Source of the DNA: Vitrella brassicaformis CCMP3155
Taxonomy: Eukaryota > Protista > Chromerida
Assembly: GCA_001179505.1 (NCBI GenBank)
Contig: CDMY01000459.1
Coordinates: forward strand, 8,222 to 72,221
Length of the DNA: 64,000 bases
Reading direction: 5' to 3'
In this document: piece by piece, positions 15,382-24,269 of the stretch
Position numbering within the stretch: the stretch's first letter is position 1
How the letters are laid out: the number at the start of each line of letters is the position of its first letter
Notes under the pieces: model-generated
What the model was told of the DNA's origin: nothing
Seen by the model: only the letters and a program-made list of their open reading frames with translations
Database searches by the model: none
Translations under genes and position numbers: made by a program

Positions 15382-18230
15382 TCACTGGCTGTCCTGCGTC
15401 TGCCTCAGCCTCCTTGCCTTGCCCTTGGGATAGTGCCTGACGCCCACACACCAACCAACACACAGCACCCCCCATCACAGACACCTTCACCCACCGATCG
15501 ATCCCTCCATCCGCCCACACATCCGTCTGCCCACCTTGTCTCGATGGGGTCAAACCCCTTCTCTTGCGCGCCCCGCACGGCCCATTGTGGAGTGGGAGCG
15601 CAGTAGTCGAGAGCACCGAACAGCTCGCCACTCGTGGCCTGATACATAGATTGACGGATGGATGGATGGAGCCACCAATCACTGATTCTCTTGAGCGTCG
15701 GTGTGTCCCTGGCTGAGGTCTTACCAGCTGGTGGAATCTATCGTAATCGATCCACGTGTGCCACACGCCGTCGATCTTGAAGCTGCATACGCCACAGAAG
15801 CAAGACCAGAGCGTCTGTGGCTGTGTGGGTGTACATGGTGCCTTCGCACGGCTTTATCGTACCTTTTTTTCGCAATGACGACGCAGTTGGAGTGCTCGTG
15901 CTCACAGGCCAGCTCGTACTCATCGGCCAACTCAGCCGAGGACGATATGATGGCGTCAGCAAAGTTCAACACCTACACACACACAGGCACACACAAAGAC
16001 AGCTGTGGGCCTGCACTCCTACCACGGTAGAGTGTGTTGGTGGTCCTCAAGTCACCTCCTGGTGGTATGGGACGTGTTTGATGGTGAGATGTGACGCTGT
16101 CGATGTGCCGCAGTAGGTGACCGACTTGATCTCGATGAAGTCGGGACGACCCAACGACACCAAACGGCCGTACTCACACGCATCCTGACACACACACACA
16201 CACACACACAGGATGCCAAGAGATACACGTGTTTGTGCTGATGGATCGATCAGTGCACTGTGTACCTGCATGTTGTGTTGTTTGACGAGTGTGAGGCGGT
16301 AGACGGTGCGCTGACGCCGCTCACGCAACGCCGTCAGGGAATCGACGAAGCGGTCCCAATAGTCCCCGAACAGAGGACGATCTGACGCACACGGAAATGC
16401 ACTCTTCTCTCCGTCTTCGTCTTGTTATGGTCTCATCTTACCGACGGCCTTGAGTGTTTCCGGCGTGGCTGCATCGACGGACACATACAGCTGAGTGACG
16501 GGCTTCAGATTGCGGATGGCCTCAGGGAACTGGGCGTTGGTCACCTGCACACACGCACATTAGCGGGCGGATACATCCACAGGATGGCTGCTGTGCTGTG
16601 CTGTGGGGTGTTGGGCCGTGGTGTGTGCGTACCAGGAAGGTGGAAATGTGTCTTTCGTGCAGCATGGCGATGAGCTCGTTGATGTGTGGGTACATGATAG
16701 GCTCGCCAACCAGACTCAACGCGCAGTGCCGGATCTTCATTGCCGCCTCCAACCTGTGTGTGTCGCCACATCCACACACGAGGCAGACGCTCGTTTGGCG
16801 GGTCTGTCTGTCTGTCTGTCTGTCTGCAATGCTGTCTGGCTGTCTGTATCTGTGGGGTCGGTCACCTACCGTTCTGGTATGACTCCGGGCATGCCTTTGA
16901 GCGTTTTGACGAGCTGTCTGTGGTTGTCGATGGTCTGCTGCACTATCATCTCGGGAGGGTCCAACGCCCAGCGCCACTCCTTGCCCACCTGTGGAACACA
17001 CACACCCAACACACACACACACACACACACAATGGCGCAATGGCACTTGCCCTGTCTAAATGAGAGAGGGGCGGCAGTCTTACAGGGTTCTTGTGGTGGC
17101 GCCAGCAGAAGACGCACTTGTTGGCGCATGCCAGGGATGGCGTGGCCTCCATGCAGGCATAGCTCTCGATCCCATAGAAAGAATGCTTGTAGCAGCCCCC
17201 ACGACCGCGCAGCTGATGCTTCGTCCACCTGCACACACACACGGCGCCACAACACCACCCACAACACCGAGTGAGTGCGTTGCCTTGGTTTTCTCCCTCT
17301 CCCTCCCCCCCTCTGTCTGCCCACCTGCAGAGCTTGACGGCCGAGTGGCTGCCGACAATGCGATAGCCCTCTTTGGTCAGCGCCGCCCTCTGCCGTGACG
17401 TCACCATCTCCCTCGCCGTCTCTCTCGCACTGCTGCCCTCACCAGAGGGCTTCCCACCCACAATGTCCTCCACATCGTCCGCCTCGGCCTCACCGCCACC
17501 CTCCTGCCCATCGTCAGACGCACTCCCATCGCTCTCAACATCGCTCTCATGGTCAGCCTCAGCAGCAGCAGCAGCAGCAGCGTGGATCTCTGGTGGGTCT
17601 GGTGAGCCCGTCATGGCTGCATGGACGAGAGGGAAGAGCCGTGTCAGCCATGGTGTGAGCTGAGGGGGGATGTCGGCCGTGTCGGTGAGAGTGCAGGTGG
17701 GCAGGATGCGGTGAGCGGAGAGCGAGTGGAGCAGCCGGTCGAGTGTGTGCGCCGCCCGGCAGAACTGCTCGCCGTACTCGTGGCTGCCGAGACCAACGAT
17801 GGCGTACCTGCAGACAGCCACACACAGATACACACACACACACACACACGTGCACCCCTTCCTCCCCTCCCCCCCTCCCTCCCTCCAGCCGTCACCTTAG
17901 CTGCGCAAGTGCCGCCTTGTCAACCCGAAAGTCATTCCTCCAGTCCTCGAGCATAGCGAAGAAGGAAGTCCCAGCAGGGGGAGGCAGACCGTCAGTGTAG
18001 GTCGAGATCACGACTATGACGCACCTCTCGCTCGTCAGGTCATCGATGTTGTAGTCGCTCATGCTGCTGACGGCCACATGCGCTCTGCTGAGGAGGTAGA
18101 GGCGGAGTTGGGACACCAGCTGCCTCGCTTCGGCTTTGGCGGTGCCTCCCAGCGAAGCAAAGAGCACCAGCACCCTCTCGCCCCTTGACGAGCCGCGACG
18201 GAGATCAGGGCGTCCAAGAGATGACCACAT
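15382..18230 (-). CDS. TYW1: tRNA wybutosine-synthesizing protein 1 (flavodoxin + radical SAM)
   Basis: Flavodoxin part FASLGGTAK...STYTDG...GLGSHEYG; GYRIVGSHSAVKLCR|WTK; GGCYKHSFYGI; CANKCVFCWR (CxxxCxxC); SLVGEP; TNAQFP; LYVSVDA; RTVYRLTL; FIEIKSVTYCG; WHTWIDY; GFDP. Confidence 0.97.
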
Positions 18231-18372
18231 AACCTCACCTTCTGTCCCTTTCGCTTTTTTCCTTGCGAAAGCTTCTTGCCTTCCTGCACCTGCGAGCTTA
18301 GCTACGGATTTACCTGTGGCGAGGCGCTTGGAGCCATCCCCTCTGATCTAAAGATGCGGAGCCCTCGACAGA

Positions 18373-21300
18373 ATGTCCGACGCCAAGGGCTCAGGGAGAG
18401 CAGGAACGAGCGCTGAGGACAGAATGGCCATCATCCTCCAGTGCAAGAACTCTCTGCCGCCCTTTCTCCTCTACGCCTTACTCATCCTCCATGCTGCCCA
18501 TGCTGCCGCGTCAGCGCGCTCTGTGGCCGTCCGAGCAGTGCACGCTCATCAGCATCCACACGCCAACTTCACCCTGCTGACCAGCGTCGAGGCCCTCCCA
18601 GCCGGCCCTTCATTCGACAGCAAAAAGGCTCAGGACATTGCCGAAGCGGAGGCGGCGAGGACAGAGCAGCTCTTCCACGGCCTTCTCGGCGAGCGTGAGG
18701 TGGCCATCGAGGGCTCTGTGCTGCAGCCGGCAGCCAAGTCGGCACCGCAGCGTGTGGCGGCGGCTGACAAGGCGACCCGTGAGGCGGCCACACTCGCCCA
18801 GGCAGAGGCTGCAGAGGCTCAGCAGGCGGCCAGAGAGTTCGATGAGTCGCTGCGGCAGGACCGATTGGCCCGACAATGGGGAGGCGGCGGTGGCCGGGGG
18901 CGGTGGAGGGACCGTGAGATTCAGGTGCTGTCTGCCGGCACGACCAGGGACGTCTTCAACCCCGCTCTCGTCTCCCTCAGTGACCTGTCGGCGGCTGACG
19001 TGCAGTCGCTTGTGGGTGCCGCAGGGGGGGCGGGAGCGGCGTCGGACGGCAAAAAGGCAGCGTATGTGGTGGCGCTGCGGTCGCAGCTTTTTAACCGGAA
19101 TGTCTGGTGTGACTCTCATGTCGTTGTCGGCTTCCTCGATGAGTCCTCCGACAGATCGGTGACCTTCAGGTGAGAAGAAGAAATGATGTGCATGATCGAC
19201 TGACATGGTGCCTGCCTGCCTTTTGTTTGTGTCTGCAGGTGCTGTCTGATGACGATTTCTGGGGCCCTGATTTGCCCTACGACTGCGCCGAGACCAAGCG
19301 GATCACGATGACAGGCCCTGACGACCCTCGCCTCATTCTGCTCTCCAAGCGCCTCACAGCAAGGAATAACACAGAGGAGGGGAAGGATTTGTGGCTGCTG
19401 TTTTTCGGCCGCGAGCACCACCGCACCCCCAATGTGCCGTGTGGCGAGCATGGCCAGCAGCCGTACCTGGTGAGGCTCTTGGTGGAGGCCTCGGCTGTGC
19501 CTCAGTGGCCTGCAAGGATAGCGGTGGACAGCAAGAGCATGATGGCACTCAAATACGACAAAGCCACGCCGGTAGCCGCAAAGAAAATGGCAGGGGACAG
19601 GGGGGAATATCTTGCCTTCTTGTCTATTGTGTGCAGGTTGAGAAGAATTGGAGCCCCTTCGAATATCCTCCGCCCCTCCCGGCCCACAGCCTCCCACCCA
19701 TCTCTCTCTCTGCGTCGGCGTCCCGGCTGCTGACAGTCTACAGCATCGAGCCCCACATCGTCTTGCAGATCGACCCACACACAGGCACCACCACCGCATT
19801 CGCCAACTCGTCCCATCCCTTTCTCCACCAGTGGGCCAACGCCGCGAGAAAGTACCAGGACGTCAGCTCCTTCGTGGTCCACGGCGGTGCCGGGGTGGCC
19901 TTTGTCGCACCATCCGCAGCCGACGACCCCTATTTCCTCAGTGTGTTCCACGTGCTGACGAGCGGGGCCAACCCACTGGAGGGCGGCGCCATGGAGACCA
20001 TCTATCAGTCGTTCTTATACAAGTTCCGCGCCACGCCTCCTTTCGACATCCTTGCCATCAGCCAGGAGCTGCCGCTCCACCGATCTCAGTGCGGGTGGGG
20101 CGCATGGGAGGCCTTTCCCGTGTCGATCAGTGTGCGGCGTGGCGACAAAGGCGACAAAGGGGACAAAGGGGACAAAGGGGAAGGTCCTCGTGTGTGGATA
20201 TCGTATGGGAGCGGCGACAAGCAGAACAGGGTGTTTGATGTGGGACTGGAGGAGTTGGAGTCGCACTTCTTCCAGGAGCCGGTCGACATCGGCGGACCGC
20301 CACAGCTCGTCGGCACCGCCATGGGAAGTAAGCACACCGAAATGTGTCCTGAAAAATGCCGCTATCTATGTTGCGTCTCTTCTCTGCTGCACATACAAAA
20401 AGGCGAGTGGCGCTTCCCAGCCCCCGCAGTGCCACCACCGAGATCAGCACAGCAGCCGCAGCCACCGTCGCAGCCCCACACAACGAGACACAGGCGGCCA
20501 CAGCCACCGTCGATGCGCTCGACAGCATCTACAGCGACACCCACACCATCTACATGGGGGTCCCCAATTACCAGCCCGGCCAGAAGAGCATCAGCAAGAG
20601 CCTCAAACTGCTGCAGAGAAAGAGACAGAGACAGAGACAGAGGGGTGGGGGTGGGGGTGGGGAGAAGGTGACGGTTGTGATGATGGCCCATTTGCGTGCG
20701 AGGCTGCCCGTGGTGCTGGACGTGCTCGACCGGTACAGACAAATGCCGCACCTCTTTGGAGAGATCCTACTCGGTGAGATAAAGAGGGGGGGAGGGAGTT
20801 GCGAGCATCGAGGCAGCAACCCCCCCCCCCTCTTCACTTTTGTGTGTCCGTGTGTGTGTCAGTATGGAACAACCAGACGGACCGGCCTCTGAGTGACACC
20901 CAGGACCCGTTTGGGCGGCACTTTGGCGATATTCAAAGGACGGAGGGCTCCGTGCCTATCAGACTGATCAACGCAGAGAAGAACTCCATGAACGTGGGCA
21001 GGCAGCCAGCCCGGCAGACCCACAGCCACTACACCCACACACTAAGGTGTCTCTTCTCTTTTCTGGCAGAACCGATTTGCCGTGTGGCCGCTAATCAAGA
21101 CACCAGGCGTCCTCATACAGGCTAGATGGATGGATGGATGGATGGATGGAGGACGAAGGCCATGTCGTGGTCTGAGAATGTGAGCATGTTTGCCCTTGTT
21201 TGGCAGGACGATGACATGTGGCTGGAGGAGGCCGACCTGCGCTGCCTGGTGGACGCCTGGTGGGTGAAGATGAAGATGCATGGCTCTCGACGCTGGCTGC

Positions 21301-22114
21301 TCTGTGAATCCGATGCTTGTCAGGCGGGCACACCCTGACCAGCTGATTGGGGCCTTCATCGAACGTCTCGACATCAACAAAGGTGGCTTACTTGATGAGA
21401 GAGGAGACACCTCTCTCTGTGCCTCTCTGTGTGGTGAGTGCGTGCAGACATGGACGAGATGGCACTGCATTGGGACGAGTGTGCGGCGGAGGAGAGGCCC
21501 GTGTGCCTCATGGGCAGGAGCTACTCGATGCTCCTGCCGCACCCTTGGCTCATCAAGACACAATACCTCCACGAATATACCAACCACCCGTAACACCCCC
21601 CCTCCACCCCCCAACAGACAGACAGACAGACAGACGGACAGACAGAGAGAGACACGGATGCCCTCCCTTCTTCCCTCCCTCCCTCCCTCCCTTTGTCTGT
21701 CTGTGTGTGTGTCTGCTCAGCGCCATGACCAGTCTGGTAGACTCGCTCTTCAACTGCGACGACCTCTACACCAACGCCCTCGTCACCTACGCCACCTCCC
21801 TCCCACCTCTCGCCGTCAACGTCACTGTCCACCGCTCACCCCTATGGGCACAGACACAAGGAGGGGCCATGTGGGTGCTCGACACTCGATGGAGGGAGCA
21901 TCGCCGGCAGTGCATTCAGAAAATCAACGACTATTTCTTGTCAAAGCCTGTGTTGGCGAGTGTGGGCAAAGCGGCGGCTCAGAGGCCAGTGGTGCTGCAT
22001 GGTGGTGATGGTGGTGGTGGTGGTGTGGTTGTTGACACTGGGACGGTGTTCAAGCGGTGGAGCCGTGTGGTGGAGTGTGCTGGGGGGAGGGAGCCGCAGA
22101 CGCCCGTTGGCTAG
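18373..22114 (+). CDS. Secretory-pathway fusion: five-bladed beta-propeller (GT91 beta-mannosyltransferase/GH130-like) + C-terminal GT64 (EXT/EXTL-type) glycosyltransferase
   Basis: Hydrophobic N-term segment. Propeller motifs FNP, GPDDPRL, EKNWSPF, VHGG, VFH, YQSFLYKF...PPF, AFP, SYGSGD. GT64 motifs EILLVWNN, NSMN|NRF, IQ|DDD, AWRAHPDQLIG, YSML, NCDD, HRRQC. All junctions splice in frame. Confidence 0.9.
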
Positions 22115-22637
22115 AGACGTTGATTGACTGACTTAGCGACACAGACAGACAGACAGACAGACAGAGACTTATGCGAATCGCAGAAGGTGCGTGTGCGTGT
22201 GTGTGATTAGTGTATGTCTTGCGTGTTGTTGAACAGCGGCTCTTTCTGTGCGCACGCACCAGGGGAAAGGTGCAGCGAGCCACCCCGACTTCACTTCAAC
22301 GTGCCATATCCTATGATCTCGCCTCACGGATTGAAAAGGAGCACACACACACACACACATGGAGACACGCACACTCACGGAAGGAAGGCCTCACAGAGCC
22401 CTGTCCGTCGTCAGTCACATCACTCCACCCATCCCACCTCACCACCAATTTGTCCGCCGCCTTCATCGCATCACGCACAGACACACGAAGCTCCGCCCAC
22501 TCACCCATCCAGCCACCCACCCACCACCAAAACACCACATCCACACACGCAGGCAACACCATCCATATGTGTGAGTGTGTGTGTGTGTGTGTGTCGGTGG
22601 GGCAGGCGGCGGTGCATGGCTGGTTGTTGGTTGTGGC

Positions 22638-23462
22638 TTAGTCCTTCTCCTTGCCCTTGCCACCGCGGAGCAGACCCGTGCGGCGCGCCGCGATGAGACC
22701 GACCTGCACACACAGATGAACAGTCGCACACACACAGGCAGACAGACAGACCGACAGACAGACAGGGAGGTGCATGGAGCTTTGGTGTGGGTGTGGGTGT
22801 GGGTGCTCGGCGGCTGGCTGACCTTCTGCCCCGGTGGAGCCATGCGCGACATGGTGGTGGGATGACCCACGTGCTGATGGTTGCCTGCACGCATCGCATC
22901 ATTATAGAGAGGGAGGGATGGAGGAGGGGGGGCTGGGTGTGTATGTGCTGTCCTGTGCTGTCCTGTGTTGTTGGTGTGCACCGCGTACCTCCTCCGTGTG
23001 GGTGTTCCACGGGGTTCATGGCCACACCGCGCACCTTGGGCCAGCAGTTGCGCTTCGCCTTATACTTGTGGTAGCTATTCCCTGAGCAACAACACCGCAA
23101 CACACACAATTGCATTGCACACCACGCTCAGACCGTCTGTGTGTGCGCGTGCCCAAGTCACGGCTCACTCAGTCAGTCACTCACCGGCCTTGAGCATCGG
23201 TTTGTCAATCCGCTGTCCGCCCGACATGATGCCGACGATGCCGCGGCAGGTGCTGGGGAGCGTCTTGCGTGAGCCCGACGGCAAGCGGACGCGGGTCTTC
23301 TTGCCGTCCTCCGAGTGGCCGGTGACCGTCGCGTAGACGCCTCCCGTCTTGGCGAGTTTGCCGCGGTCGCCGGCCTTCTCCTCCACAGACGACACCACCG
23401 TCCCCTCGGGCATCCTGCCCACCGGCAGGATGTTGCCCACACACAGGTGAGCTGACACACAC

Positions 23463-23499
<37 letters not shown>

Positions 23500-24269
23500 A
23501 GTGCGTCGTAGGGTGACGGAGGGAGGGAGGGAGGGAGGGAGGGAGGGGGAGGAATGTGAGTCTACCTACCGTTTTTGCCGGCGTAGACGAATTGTCCGGT
23601 GTGGAGTCCCTCGACGGCGGGCATGAGCTCCTTCTTGATGCCGTAGCGAGTGCTGTCGCGGAACACAACCTACACAACACACCACAGCACACCACACACA
23701 CACAGTGGTGAAAGGTTGTTGTTATTCTGTCTGTGTGTCTGTCTGTCGCGCGTACCTCGGCGAGCGGTGCGCCACGGCCGGGGTCGTGAATAATCGACTT
23801 GACGATGCCCTTGGTGTACCTAACGACACACACGACACGGCACGGCAACACATCAGCCAGCATACAGTCTTCCCTCCCTCCCTCCCTCCCTCCCTGTCAA
23901 GGTGTAGGTACGATCGACTCACTCACCCCTGCCTCTCGGCGTAGTCGAGCACCCGCATCTTGGCGGGTCCCTTGCGGTGGTGGGTGTGGGACTTGAACAC
24001 CGACCCACGACCCTTACGCTGGGCTGCACACACACACACACACACACGGACACAGACAGACAGACACAGACACAGACAGACACGTGTGTGAGGGGGACGC
24101 ATCGCGCCAGTGAGGTGTGGAGGCCATCGAGGCCTCTCGTGTGCACCCCATTCCTCCTGGCTGTGCGTGTGTGCGTGAGGGGGGGTCCTGCGGCTGCCTG
24201 GCTCGCTGTGAGTGAGAGATCTCTCTGTTGTTTCCTGTCTATCGCCTTACATCTGATAACGCGCCCCAT
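22638..24269 (-). CDS. RPL8: 60S ribosomal protein L8 (uL2)
   Basis: MGRVIR|[67 protein letters not shown]|[10 protein letters not shown]. Confidence 0.99.

Follow-up and report, generated by a model that had tools for sequence, protein, structure and literature searches.

Described propeller and GT64 glycosyltransferases

To our knowledge, the β-propeller glycosyltransferase fold has been recognized in only two small CAZy families, GT108 of Leishmania and GT91 of yeasts; the GH130 phosphorylases are relatives of these propellers. The GT91 Bmt proteins are membrane-anchored GDP-Man transferases of the Golgi lumen, and phosphate or Man-1-P chemistry would not be expected in that compartment. 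The GT64 domain is a GT-A enzyme with a DXD motif, and its characterized relatives add α-HexNAc or hexose from UDP- or GDP-sugars; one of the plant enzymes that carries this domain, GINT1, is the GIPC glucosamine transferase. In the exostosins a single type II polypeptide contains a pair of transferase modules (PMC9178029), a concept that the protist fusion discussed below has in common with them.

The locus described here lies in Vitrella brassicaformis contig CDMY01000459.1, within a 64,000 nucleotide stretch (the window, whose numbering is used throughout). Its predicted propeller resembles GT91 (Candida albicans Bmt1-9, Komagataella Bmt1-4), the best reviewed structural match, in having an EDPR-type Asp motif, an EKNWxPF-type motif and sub-threshold matches at about positions 245–300 of the BMT profile; unlike the Bmt proteins, which are single-module fungal enzymes, it is followed by a GT64 domain and occurs in protists. 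The same five-bladed propeller is present in GH130 (Teth514_1788, Lin0857, Uhgb_MS, RaMP1) and in Leishmania GT108 (MTP1-4), and the NP, EDPR and YGxxD motifs align with theirs, but large insertions and a pair of conserved Cys residues set the protist family apart, and it is predicted to be membrane-anchored and luminal, whereas those enzymes are soluble and cytosolic or bacterial. Plant GINT1 (PF24793 plus PF09258) is likewise a two-module protein of similar length (about 730–780 aa) with a C-terminal GT64, but the protist N-terminal module is not detectably GINT1_N (profile and neighbour searches). Finally, the GT64 part is homologous to that of EXT1, EXT2 and EXTL3 (GT47 plus GT64) and of EXTL2 (GT64 alone), and its DXD and NCDD motifs align with theirs, but its partner is a propeller and not a GT-B type GT47; GT47 (PF03016) matched no homologue and no piece of the window.

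Gene structure at the Vitrella locus

The gene lies on the + strand and runs from an ATG at 18373 to a stop codon at 22112–22114. Its splicing is known from X4, an RNA-like read set that gave the sole spliced RNA assembly (k-mer depth about 10), in which RNA coverage is unbroken from 18262 to about 22164. This RNA indicates a single transcription unit that contains nine introns, including one of the GC-AG type. The features are as follows.

18354..18416, + strand, upstream ORF of 20 codons, in a different frame from the main ATG and overlapping it (sequence and translation)
18373..19169, + strand, exon 1: start codon, signal anchor, stalk, first propeller strands with FNPAL (18955–18969)
19170..19238, + strand, intron 1, RNA form: 69 nt, CAG|GTGAGA...CAG|GTG; X4 joint 19166>19236, cut +3
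19239..19571, + strand, exon 2: propeller blades with DC, GPDDPRL (19314–19334, catalytic-Asp motif) and VPC
19572..19636, + strand, intron 2: 65 nt, GTAGCC..CAG, in frame; X4 joint
19637..20327, + strand, exon 3: remaining propeller with VEKNWSPF (19637–19660) and YGSGD (20204–20218)
20328..20402, + strand, intron 3, RNA form: 75 nt, GAA|GTAAGC...AAAAAG|G; X4 joint
20403..20773, + strand, exon 4: Ala/Thr-rich linker, basic/Gly run, first GT64 strand KVTVVMMAH (20665–20691)
20774..20862, + strand, intron 4: 89 nt, GT-AG, phase 1; X4 joint
20863..20993, + strand, exon 5: GT64, VWNNQ ... NSMN; X4 contigs, tblastn
20994..21069, + strand, intron 5: 76 nt, GT-AG; X4 joint
21070..21120, + strand, exon 6: GT64, NRFAVWPLIKTPGVLIQ; tblastn
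21121..21206, + strand, intron 6: 86 nt, GC-AG, CAG|GCTAGA...GGCAG|GAC; carries a (GGAT)n repeat
21207..21259, + strand, exon 7: GT64 DXD motif, DDDMWLEEADLRCLVDAW; tblastn
21260..21323, + strand, intron 7: 64 nt, GT-AG; X4 joint
21324..21382, + strand, exon 8: GT64, RAHPDQLIGAF...
21383..21447, + strand, intron 8: 65 nt, GT-AG; X4 joint
21448..21589, + strand, exon 9: GT64, ...YSMLLPHPWLIKTQYLHEYTNHP; X4 contigs, tblastn
21590..21720, + strand, intron 9: 131 nt, GT-AG; (CAGA)n and CT-rich repeats
21721..22114, + strand, exon 10: end of GT64 with FNCDDLY (21749–21769), Gly-rich tail, stop codon 22112–22114

The upstream ORF is included in an X4 contig that spans 18262–18865. In exon 1 a hydrophobic segment, the putative signal anchor, occupies amino acids 28–48 (bp 18454–18516) and is followed by an Ala/Glu-rich stalk of helical character, at the equivalent site of which a homologue model has a helical hairpin; the exon 1 frame aligns with homologues P0011 and P0003 as far as 19170 (tblastn). 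Exon 2 aligns with P0001, P0002, P0003, P0005 and P0011 (tblastn and multiple alignment). Exon 3 carries the further motifs EPH, HGGAG, LSVFH, YxxFLYKF, PPF and LPL, as well as a (GDK)4 insertion (20141–20179) derived from a 9-nt tandem repeat, and the basic/Gly run of exon 4 is encoded by a low-complexity repeat (20608–20675). Removal of intron 4 builds the V codon of LLVWNN. The GC-AG intron 6 lies where homologues read ...GVIIQDDDMW without a break (tblastn), and by length accounting the joint 21120|21207 is the sole fit to the X4 contig 18 "side" values 97/44/55, with 21114–21160 masked as repeat. For intron 9, positions 21589 and 21721 are adjacent within the same contig. The motifs FNPAL, GPDDPRL, VEKNWSPF, YGSGD, QDDDMW and FNCDDLY are all present, among them those named in an earlier sequence-only reading of this DNA, which had also noted the replacement of E by D in GPDDPRL; the Ala/Thr-rich stalk that it placed between the two domains is the linker in exon 4.

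The N-terminal propeller domain

Exon 3 alone finds 95 relatives, with E values down to 1e-36 (phmmer). Structural work was carried out on the homologues P0011 and P0005 and not on the window's own protein. An AlphaFold2 model of residues 150–560 of P0011, the closest full-length homologue, is a five-bladed propeller (pLDDT 89.3, pTM 0.90). When it was compared with the PDB (VIA-align), the top 21 entries were all GH130 (Z 21.4–24.6), followed by the GT108 proteins MTP1/2/4 (Z 19.4–20.6) and then GH43/GH32 (at most 18.4); the GH130 and GT108 structures align over 260–302 residues with rmsd 3.3–4.1 and 10–14% identity. The best Foldseek matches in the PDB are β-1,2-mannoside phosphorylases (E about 2e-8 to 1e-5), and those in Swiss-Prot are Candida and Komagataella Bmt1-9, Bmt8, Bmt6, Bmt3 and Bmt2 among them (E 2e-8 to 3e-6, TM by query about 0.5, with both sides predicted models). 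Among solved and reviewed proteins of this fold, those that match best make or break β-mannosides.

The Pfam BMT profile (PF12141, cut-off 28.3 bits) gave no match to pieces of the window and only sub-threshold matches to seven of 27 family members (best E 0.0011; at most 11.3 bits in members scanned singly), and the GH130 profile (PF04041, cut-off 26 bits) matched three of the 27 at no more than 14.8 bits, none above the cut-off. A profile of the protist family found GH130 chains among the PDB sequences only at E 0.07–1. Because the Pfam BMT and GH130 matches are sub-threshold, the propeller is best regarded as a separate family of the GH130/GT108/GT91 fold.

The Asp adjacent to E136 of Uhgb_MS (D137 by our own count) we take to be the GH130 catalytic residue. 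The family motif GPEDPRL aligns with GIEDCRV of Uhgb_MS and with GCEDPRV of 4onz; although weak, these HMM alignments are consistent with the fold comparison. At least 90% of the rows in the family alignment retain the EDPR-motif Asp, as does GPDDPRL of the window, and throughout the propeller family the catalytic Asp and the residues of the pocket are near-invariant, so the catalytic Asp that the sequence-only reading had put forward for checking has not been lost. The Glu that precedes it in the family corresponds to E136 in the GIEDCRV segment of Uhgb_MS, which has been named as a β-1,2 determinant, and so matches the β-1,2-type signature (PMC12814180). Taken on the homologue model, the fold matches and the retained Asp bear out the earlier description of a BMT/GH130-like propeller, and the supported model-based assignment of the N-terminal domain is to a GH130/GT108/GT91-type propeller with five blades.

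The C-terminal GT64 domain

Exon 10 by itself matches PF09258 (E 5e-7, 29.6 bits; cut-off 21.3), the fused homologues match it with 90–136 bits, and a local GT64 HMM spans amino acids 696–1001 of the window protein model. The DXD motif (GVLIQDDDMW) is encoded at 21106–21221 across exons 6 and 7, and the NCDD motif (FNCDDLY) lies at 21749–21769; in P0011 the corresponding segments align with MVDDDTLI and NCDDIAMN of EXTL2. The relatives found are EXTL2 (E 5e-12), EXTL3 (1e-11), EXT2 (4e-8) and also EXT1. By sequence homology the C-terminal domain is a GT64, as had been proposed.

A conserved two-domain architecture

Both domains are carried by 21 database proteins, which places the two in one polypeptide as the sequence-only reading had it. 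In P0001 the fusion is an MMETSP transcript, and in P0099 it is an intronless 1010-aa ORF found on several metagenome contigs, with a TPT/UAA gene adjoining it. Homologues are found in a dinoflagellate (Polarella glacialis) and a haptophyte (Prymnesium parvum). A nucleotide-sugar transporter is carried as well by some of the proteins with both domains, fusions to TPT/EamA nucleotide-sugar transporters or ricin-B lectin domains are seen among relatives, and in some lineages two or three propellers and a nucleotide-sugar transporter share one polypeptide. The full-length model of P0005 has a pTM of 0.86, and it suggests that this fusion may be a rigid two-domain body. The joining of propeller and GT64 in one polypeptide is therefore supported as a conserved architecture. 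None of the roughly 20 fused proteins has a functional name, and in the literature searched no paper that pairs GT64 with GH130 or GT91 was found; each module is already known on its own.

Splicing and the reading frame

The RNA-supported introns do not all preserve the frame. X4 removes 19170–19238 (69 nt) and 20328–20402 (75 nt), which leaves the message one base short of frame at each joint, so that three separate ORFs result (289, 407 and 349 aa); with the RNA form of intron 3 the propeller frame continues to a stop at 20669–20671. The dominant assembled isoform at the locus thus appears to be unproductive. Assembled contigs drop minor isoforms, however, and a missing junction does not mean that an isoform is absent. 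The remaining seven junctions are in frame; six of them are visible as X4 contig joints, and the seventh is that of the GC-AG intron (21121–21206). The earlier claim of one in-frame spliced ORF accordingly holds for a nine-intron single unit with seven junctions in frame, but not for introns 1 and 3 as the RNA has them.

An uninterrupted 1008-aa ORF is obtained only with the donors 19159 (TCG|GTGACC) and 20344 (AAT|GTGTCC), neither of which is supported in any read set examined. Donor 19159 gives an 80-nt intron 1, ends exon 1 at 19158 and restores the frame with deletion of VTFR, which shortens a stretch that in most homologues has a constant length of 20 residues (tblastn, alignment); the conserved spacing LDxxxxxxRPLxVLxSxDFF would require removal of 68 nt and no other length. 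Donor 20344 gives a 59-nt intron 3, extends exon 3 to 20343 and enters the GT64 frame. In exon 4 the codon-usage log-odds are +25 bits in the GT64 frame and −21 bits in the propeller frame, from the first codon onward. The RNA-used donors 19170 and 20328 are closer to the textbook splice-donor consensus than the frame-restoring ones, but the latter are no weaker than other donors that the gene uses (GTAGCC, GTGGCT, GTAACA and GCTAGA). No indels were found between the window and four independent read sets, and the loss of frame therefore does not stem from misassembly. The 1008 codons contain no in-exon stops or frameshifts, and 49 of the 51 invariant positions (end of the propeller and GT64) and 36 of the 37 conserved propeller positions are retained; the coding sequence is therefore not decayed.

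Alternative interpretations

It is possible, although we consider it the less probable case, that the locus is a recently disabled but still transcribed pseudogene, or makes a constitutively unproductive transcript, so that no full-length fusion is produced here; the family finding would stand in either event. The two frame-breaking joints (69 and 75 nt) of X4 contig 17 are what such a locus would show, the need for a 68-nt removal resembles a one-base loss at the intron 1 donor, RNA depth is low (about 10, compared with 195 in the neighbouring gene) as expected under nonsense-mediated decay, and the protein collections searched contain no annotated self-match. These points have to be set against the intact codons and retained residues just described, the strong codon bias of exon 4 in the productive frame, and the presence of adequate frame-restoring GT donors only 11 and 16 nt away, in an assembly that may have missed an in-frame isoform. 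That two adjacent genes, one for a propeller and one for GT64, have been wrongly merged is very improbable. The stop of the RNA-supported propeller frame (at 20671) and a 349-aa GT64 ORF that begins with an ATG at 20554 could be read in this way, but exon 4 is common to the linker and the first GT64 strand, a GT64 protein that starts at 20554 would lack a signal or anchor, and the same fusion is present in 21 relatives, once as an intronless ORF. Contig 17 of X4 extends to about 20641 and contig 18 begins near 20667, so that contigs from the two sides end about 25 nt apart within exon 4, at the low-complexity repeat; with RNA coverage continuous, no pair of separate transcripts, which would have refuted the sequence-only reading, was seen.

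Other alternatives concern what the propeller does. It could resemble GH130 in being a phosphorylase or hydrolase, with a role in trimming or recycling a β-mannoside, or it could be a non-catalytic carbohydrate-binding module that presents the acceptor to GT64, which would leave GT64 as the sole transferase. The nearest solved structures are indeed phosphorylases, lectin domains are found fused to other propellers of the family, and GH130 β-1,2 phosphorylases have only weak glycosyltransferase activity (PMC12814180). We nevertheless think this unlikely, as the predicted type II luminal topology fits the GT91 Bmt proteins better than cytosolic phosphorylases and the transporter fusions point to nucleotide-sugar donors, while near-invariance of the catalytic Asp and pocket residues family-wide argues against a binding module. 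Less probable still is a protist counterpart of plant GINT1 that glycosylates glycosyl-inositol-phosphoryl-ceramide and whose N-terminal domain is a diverged GINT1_N and not a second catalyst. Length and domain order are similar, and the Atlas clusters nearest to full-length P0005 are plant GINT1 (score 0.90–0.91, 179–182 shared language-model features), with the GT64-only EXTL2 cluster lower (0.80). Against it, PF24793 is unmatched in 27 propeller sequences (E≤1) and in full-length homologues (E≤0.01), assuming that the Pfam set includes it; GINT1 is missing among the 100 named Atlas neighbours of the isolated propeller, and neither the 99 shapes closest to the propeller model nor the 30 Swiss-Prot structural matches listed include it. 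In superposition the GINT1 cluster covers just 280 residues of the P0005 model (within 349–778 of P0005), which correspond to the GT64 half, with TM 0.32–0.34, although a different domain orientation would look identical. The parallel in layout with GINT1 drawn in the sequence-only reading is thus apt, and by these searches the N-terminal domain belongs to a different family.

Proposed function

The reading that we favour, and think probable, is that the gene product belongs to a conserved but unnamed family of protist glycosyltransferases, which have two modules, are membrane-anchored and belong to the secretory pathway, and that it is made productively through alternative donors. The protein would consist of a signal anchor, a helical stalk, a five-bladed β-propeller, a linker and GT64, and at this locus its full-length form would arise through the weaker alternative donors 19159 and 20344. 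A luminal site and a nucleotide-sugar donor are predicted because of the N-terminal hydrophobic anchor, the transporter and lectin fusions and the TPT/UAA neighbour of P0099; the GT64 part has no anchor of its own unless fused. Both modules would then be active transferases in the Golgi or ER lumen. By analogy with GT91 and GT108, the propeller may carry out an inverting β-mannosyl-type transfer from GDP-Man, after which GT64 would add a second sugar, so that two successive residues might be placed on one acceptor, which could be a glycoprotein, a wall polymer or the head group of a glycolipid.

The protist proteins form a third, sequence-distinct branch of the propeller fold, widespread in marine protists (dinoflagellate, haptophyte, MMETSP and metagenomes), in which the propeller is fixed to GT64 and at times to a nucleotide-sugar transporter or lectin domain. 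The branch offers a concrete handle on undescribed glycan and glycolipid pathways of these organisms, and a natural test case of two unrelated catalytic folds cooperating in a single chain, as in the exostosins. The co-polymerase making an alternating Man/HexNAc glycan that the sequence-only reading envisaged is a proposal. A wider version, in which the family is a self-contained, single-chain marine-protist glycan synthase whose GT91/GT108-like β-mannosyl-type propeller and α-transferring GT64 alternate on the same chain to build an alternating polymer or a glycolipid head group of a new kind, we regard as a long shot; if it were true, sugar import and synthesis would be combined in one protein in some lineages.

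Gene structure and transcription

The gene under study lies on the + strand (18373-22114) and comprises ten exons separated by short introns in GC-rich surroundings. Four public read runs were compared with window positions 18000-22400; three are DNA-like, with collinear contigs, and the fourth (X4) is RNA-like, with spliced contigs. The window shows zero base differences and zero indels relative to all four over this span, so its sequence is reliable. Eight introns are directly backed by X4, and a ninth is placed by homologue continuity and the X4 contig 18 "side" values:

19170-19238 (+), intron, directly backed by X4
19572-19636 (+), intron, directly backed by X4
20328-20402 (+), intron, directly backed by X4
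20774-20862 (+), intron, directly backed by X4
20994-21069 (+), intron, directly backed by X4
21121-21206 (+), ninth intron, GC-AG, with a (GGAT)n microsatellite
21260-21323 (+), intron, directly backed by X4
21383-21447 (+), intron, directly backed by X4
21590-21720 (+), intron, directly backed by X4

The motif GV(I/L)IQDDDMW is unbroken in homologues across intron 21121-21206 (tblastn), and the contig 18 "side" values (97/44/55) fit its removal; the (GGAT)n repeat (21114-21160) is masked there. X4 RNA coverage spans ∼18262 to ∼22164, and its contigs 17 and 18 end ∼25 nt apart at a low-complexity repeat. Both ends lie within the single exon 4, which favors one transcription unit over two; as the sequence-only reading supposed, there is no sign of two transcripts. 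Read-based contigs are also broken by (GT)n and (CAGA)n repeats, which occur in introns 4 and 9 and in the 3′ flank. The transcribed 5′ region also holds a 20-codon upstream ORF (18354-18416, +; MRSPRQNV...) that begins 19 nt 5′ of the main ATG and runs across it in a different frame.

Domains of the encoded protein

A Pfam scan of the raw ORF pieces matched only the last GT64 exon (PF09258, above threshold); assigning the domains therefore called for homologues and structural models. All GT64 exons are covered by homologues (tblastn), whose own PF09258 scores are 90-136 bits. Among solved structures the closest relatives are EXTL2 (E 5e-12), EXTL3 and EXT1/2, and the alignment matches up the DDD and NCDD segments. 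The C-terminal module is GT64, in agreement with the initial assignment.

For the N-terminal module, exon 3 alone finds 95 relatives among 1.8 billion representatives (best E 1e-36). Motifs common to the family are NP(S/A), C, GPEDPRL, C, EKNWSPF, PH, HGG and LSxxH, together with Y..Y.F...PPF, LPL and YGxGD..SR. Family sequences match Pfam BMT (at the EKNW region) and GH130 (at the EDPR region) only below threshold, and they therefore form a separate family by sequence. An AF2 model was built for the propeller of P0011 (residues 150-560, 72-row alignment), the closest full-length homologue rather than the window's own protein; it has pLDDT 89.3 and pTM 0.90. In VIA-align the 21 best PDB entries for this model are all GH130 (Z 21.4-24.6), followed by Leishmania GT108 (Z 19.4-20.6) and then by GH43 and GH32 propellers (Z ≤ 18.4). 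Foldseek places beta-1,2-mannoside phosphorylases on top in the PDB, and Candida and Komagataella Bmt proteins (GT91) on top among the Swiss-Prot models. The proposal of a BMT/GH130-like propeller is thus upheld by the homologue model, which matches the GH130, GT108 and GT91 folds.

HMM alignments place the family's E-D pair on E136-D137 of Uhgb_MS, where the Asp adjacent to E136 is the GH130 catalytic residue; the equivalent window residues are D-D (GPDDPRL). E136 of Uhgb_MS is a beta-1,2 determinant, and beta-1,2-specific GH130 enzymes, like GT108, also use GDP-Man (PMC12814180). A 9-nt tandem repeat of four copies (20141-20179, +) encodes (GDK)4 in a propeller loop and is absent from homologues; it drew spurious low-complexity matches (P0044, P0074, P0095) in the protein search.

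The fusion as a family trait

PF09258 lies C-terminal to the propeller in seven long homologues, and local HMMs find both modules in 21 retrieved proteins. P0001, of MMETSP transcript origin, has three tandem propellers and a GT64, and P0099 (1010 aa) shares the window protein's layout and is encoded by a single ORF without introns, present on metagenome contigs of several samples. The propeller-GT64 pairing first read from this one locus is thereby borne out at the family level; the fusion is firmly established at that level, as are the domain calls. In the propeller-domain tree, the window protein falls in a clade (SH-aLRT 96) with the homologues P0011, P0109, P0003 and P0053 and the Prymnesium protein P0006, and the remaining GT64-fused forms occupy a neighboring clade. 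The full-length model of another homologue, P0005 (pTM 0.86), suggests that the two modules may hold a fixed mutual arrangement.

Other partners of the propeller include TPT/EamA-type nucleotide-sugar transporters. P0002 joins two propellers to GT64 and TPT in one chain, P0128 has GT64 and TPT in one chain, and P0025/P0124 (Polarella glacialis CAE8686648.1, in a cluster that includes an MMETSP transcript) has propeller and TPT without GT64; such linkage of enzyme and transporter seems unusual. In P0018, P0031 and P0048, members of the same propeller family, a ricin-B lectin domain takes the place of GT64. All of these other partners fit a role in building glycans from nucleotide sugars in the lumen.

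The 1802-aa MMETSP protein (P0001/P0097) carries, besides its three propellers and one GT64, ∼400 extra C-terminal residues. An aquaporin (MIP) gene lies immediately 3′ of the orthologue-like P0099 gene on all contigs shown (L001-L003 and a 26-kb ENA contig). The 26-kb contig also carries a gene for a TPT/UAA nucleotide-sugar transporter, in opposite orientation and ∼4.3 kb upstream.

The reading frame

The sequence-only reading also held that the two modules are encoded in one in-frame message, and at this locus that claim stands in part: alternative donors give a continuous ORF, but the X4-supported joints break the frame of the message at exon 1/2 and again at exon 3/4, leaving it one base short each time. 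The X4-spliced message contains three ORFs:

ORF 1 (+), 289 aa: anchor and stalk with the first propeller strands, ending in a shifted tail
ORF 2 (+), 407 aa: remaining propeller, then a shifted tail, with a stop at 20671
ORF 3 (+), 349 aa, from ATG 20554: GT64 without anchor

GT64 translated alone would have no route into the secretory pathway. The segment LDxxxxxxRPLxVLxSxDFF has a fixed length of 20 residues in homologues, and this spacing is met in the window (LDESSDRSVTFRVLSDDDFW) only by removal of 68 nt, as against the 69 removed. Donors at 19159 (TCG|GTGACC) and 20344 (AAT|GTGTCC), in place of those at 19170 and 20328, yield the continuous 1008-aa ORF. They are weaker than both donor sites shown by the X4 RNA contig and no weaker than GTAGCC, GTGGCT, GTAACA and GCTAGA, which are demonstrably used in the same gene. 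X4 consists of assembled contigs, and read contigs hide minor isoforms. The genome's own annotated protein gave no self-hit in two protein collections (searches with exon 3 at any length, exon 3 at 234-745 aa, and the GT64 region at 555-1765 aa), so these offer neither an outside gene model nor evidence on isoforms; they likewise contained no transcript-derived ORF from the source organism, and a gapped-pattern scan of JGI metagenome contigs found no spliced exon 1/2 joint.

The 1008 codons contain no in-exon stop or frameshift, the window retains 36 of the 37 propeller positions under strong conservation and 49 of the 51 sites that are identical in seven fused homologues, and exon 4 codon usage favors the GT64 frame from the first codon (log-odds +25 bits, versus -21 for the propeller frame). 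Together these points speak for selection on the coding sequence as a single protein, either now or until very recently. The frames could also be rejoined by the downstream acceptors 20452/55/61/73; donor 20344 is judged the likelier route, since the GT64 frame of exon 4 scores as coding right from the first codon. Length polymorphism of the repeat at 20608-20675 as a frame switch is ruled out, as it is 68 letters long in read sets X1, X3 and X5 alike, and so is programmed ribosomal frameshifting, for which a -1 shift would be needed at both joints and a slippery heptamer is present at neither.

Comparison with plant GINT1 and possible function

Plant GINT1 (GINT1_N plus GT64) is the closest Atlas neighbor of the whole protein, a likeness anticipated by the sequence-only reading. 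However, its PF24793 is matched by no homologue examined, it is missing among the propeller's neighbors in the structure and Atlas comparisons, and its superposition covers only the GT64 half. Its layout is therefore, as far as tested, analogous to that of the fusion, with an N-module of another family by Pfam and Atlas-cluster comparison. GT64-based protein searches for GINT1 returned the protist family alone, and GINT1_N was compared indirectly only. In exostosins the partner of GT64 is GT47, a domain that the family here lacks. No relevant paper emerged from literature searches that combined GT64 with GH130, GT91 or "propeller", and within the reach of these searches the pairing is undescribed at the family level.

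One anchored chain carries two folds with intact active-site motifs. For the function of the fusion protein we hypothesize a luminal bifunctional transferase, in which the GT91/GT108-like propeller would perform an inverting beta-mannosyl-type transfer from GDP-Man and GT64 would add the second residue. The outcome could be polymerization, as in the co-polymerase first proposed, or two sugars added in sequence.

Flanking genes

Inside the gene itself, the minus-strand ORFs 18613-19206, 19119-19799 and 21045-21614 were considered as genes and rejected; they have no Pfam match and look like GC-rich artifacts. The neighboring genes lie on the opposite strand:

17895-18230 (-), flavodoxin-domain exon, X4 RNA depth ∼195
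23180-23863 (-), ribosomal protein L2/L8 C-terminal exon

The flavodoxin-domain exon, together with ORF 16525-17046, is presumably TYW1-like.
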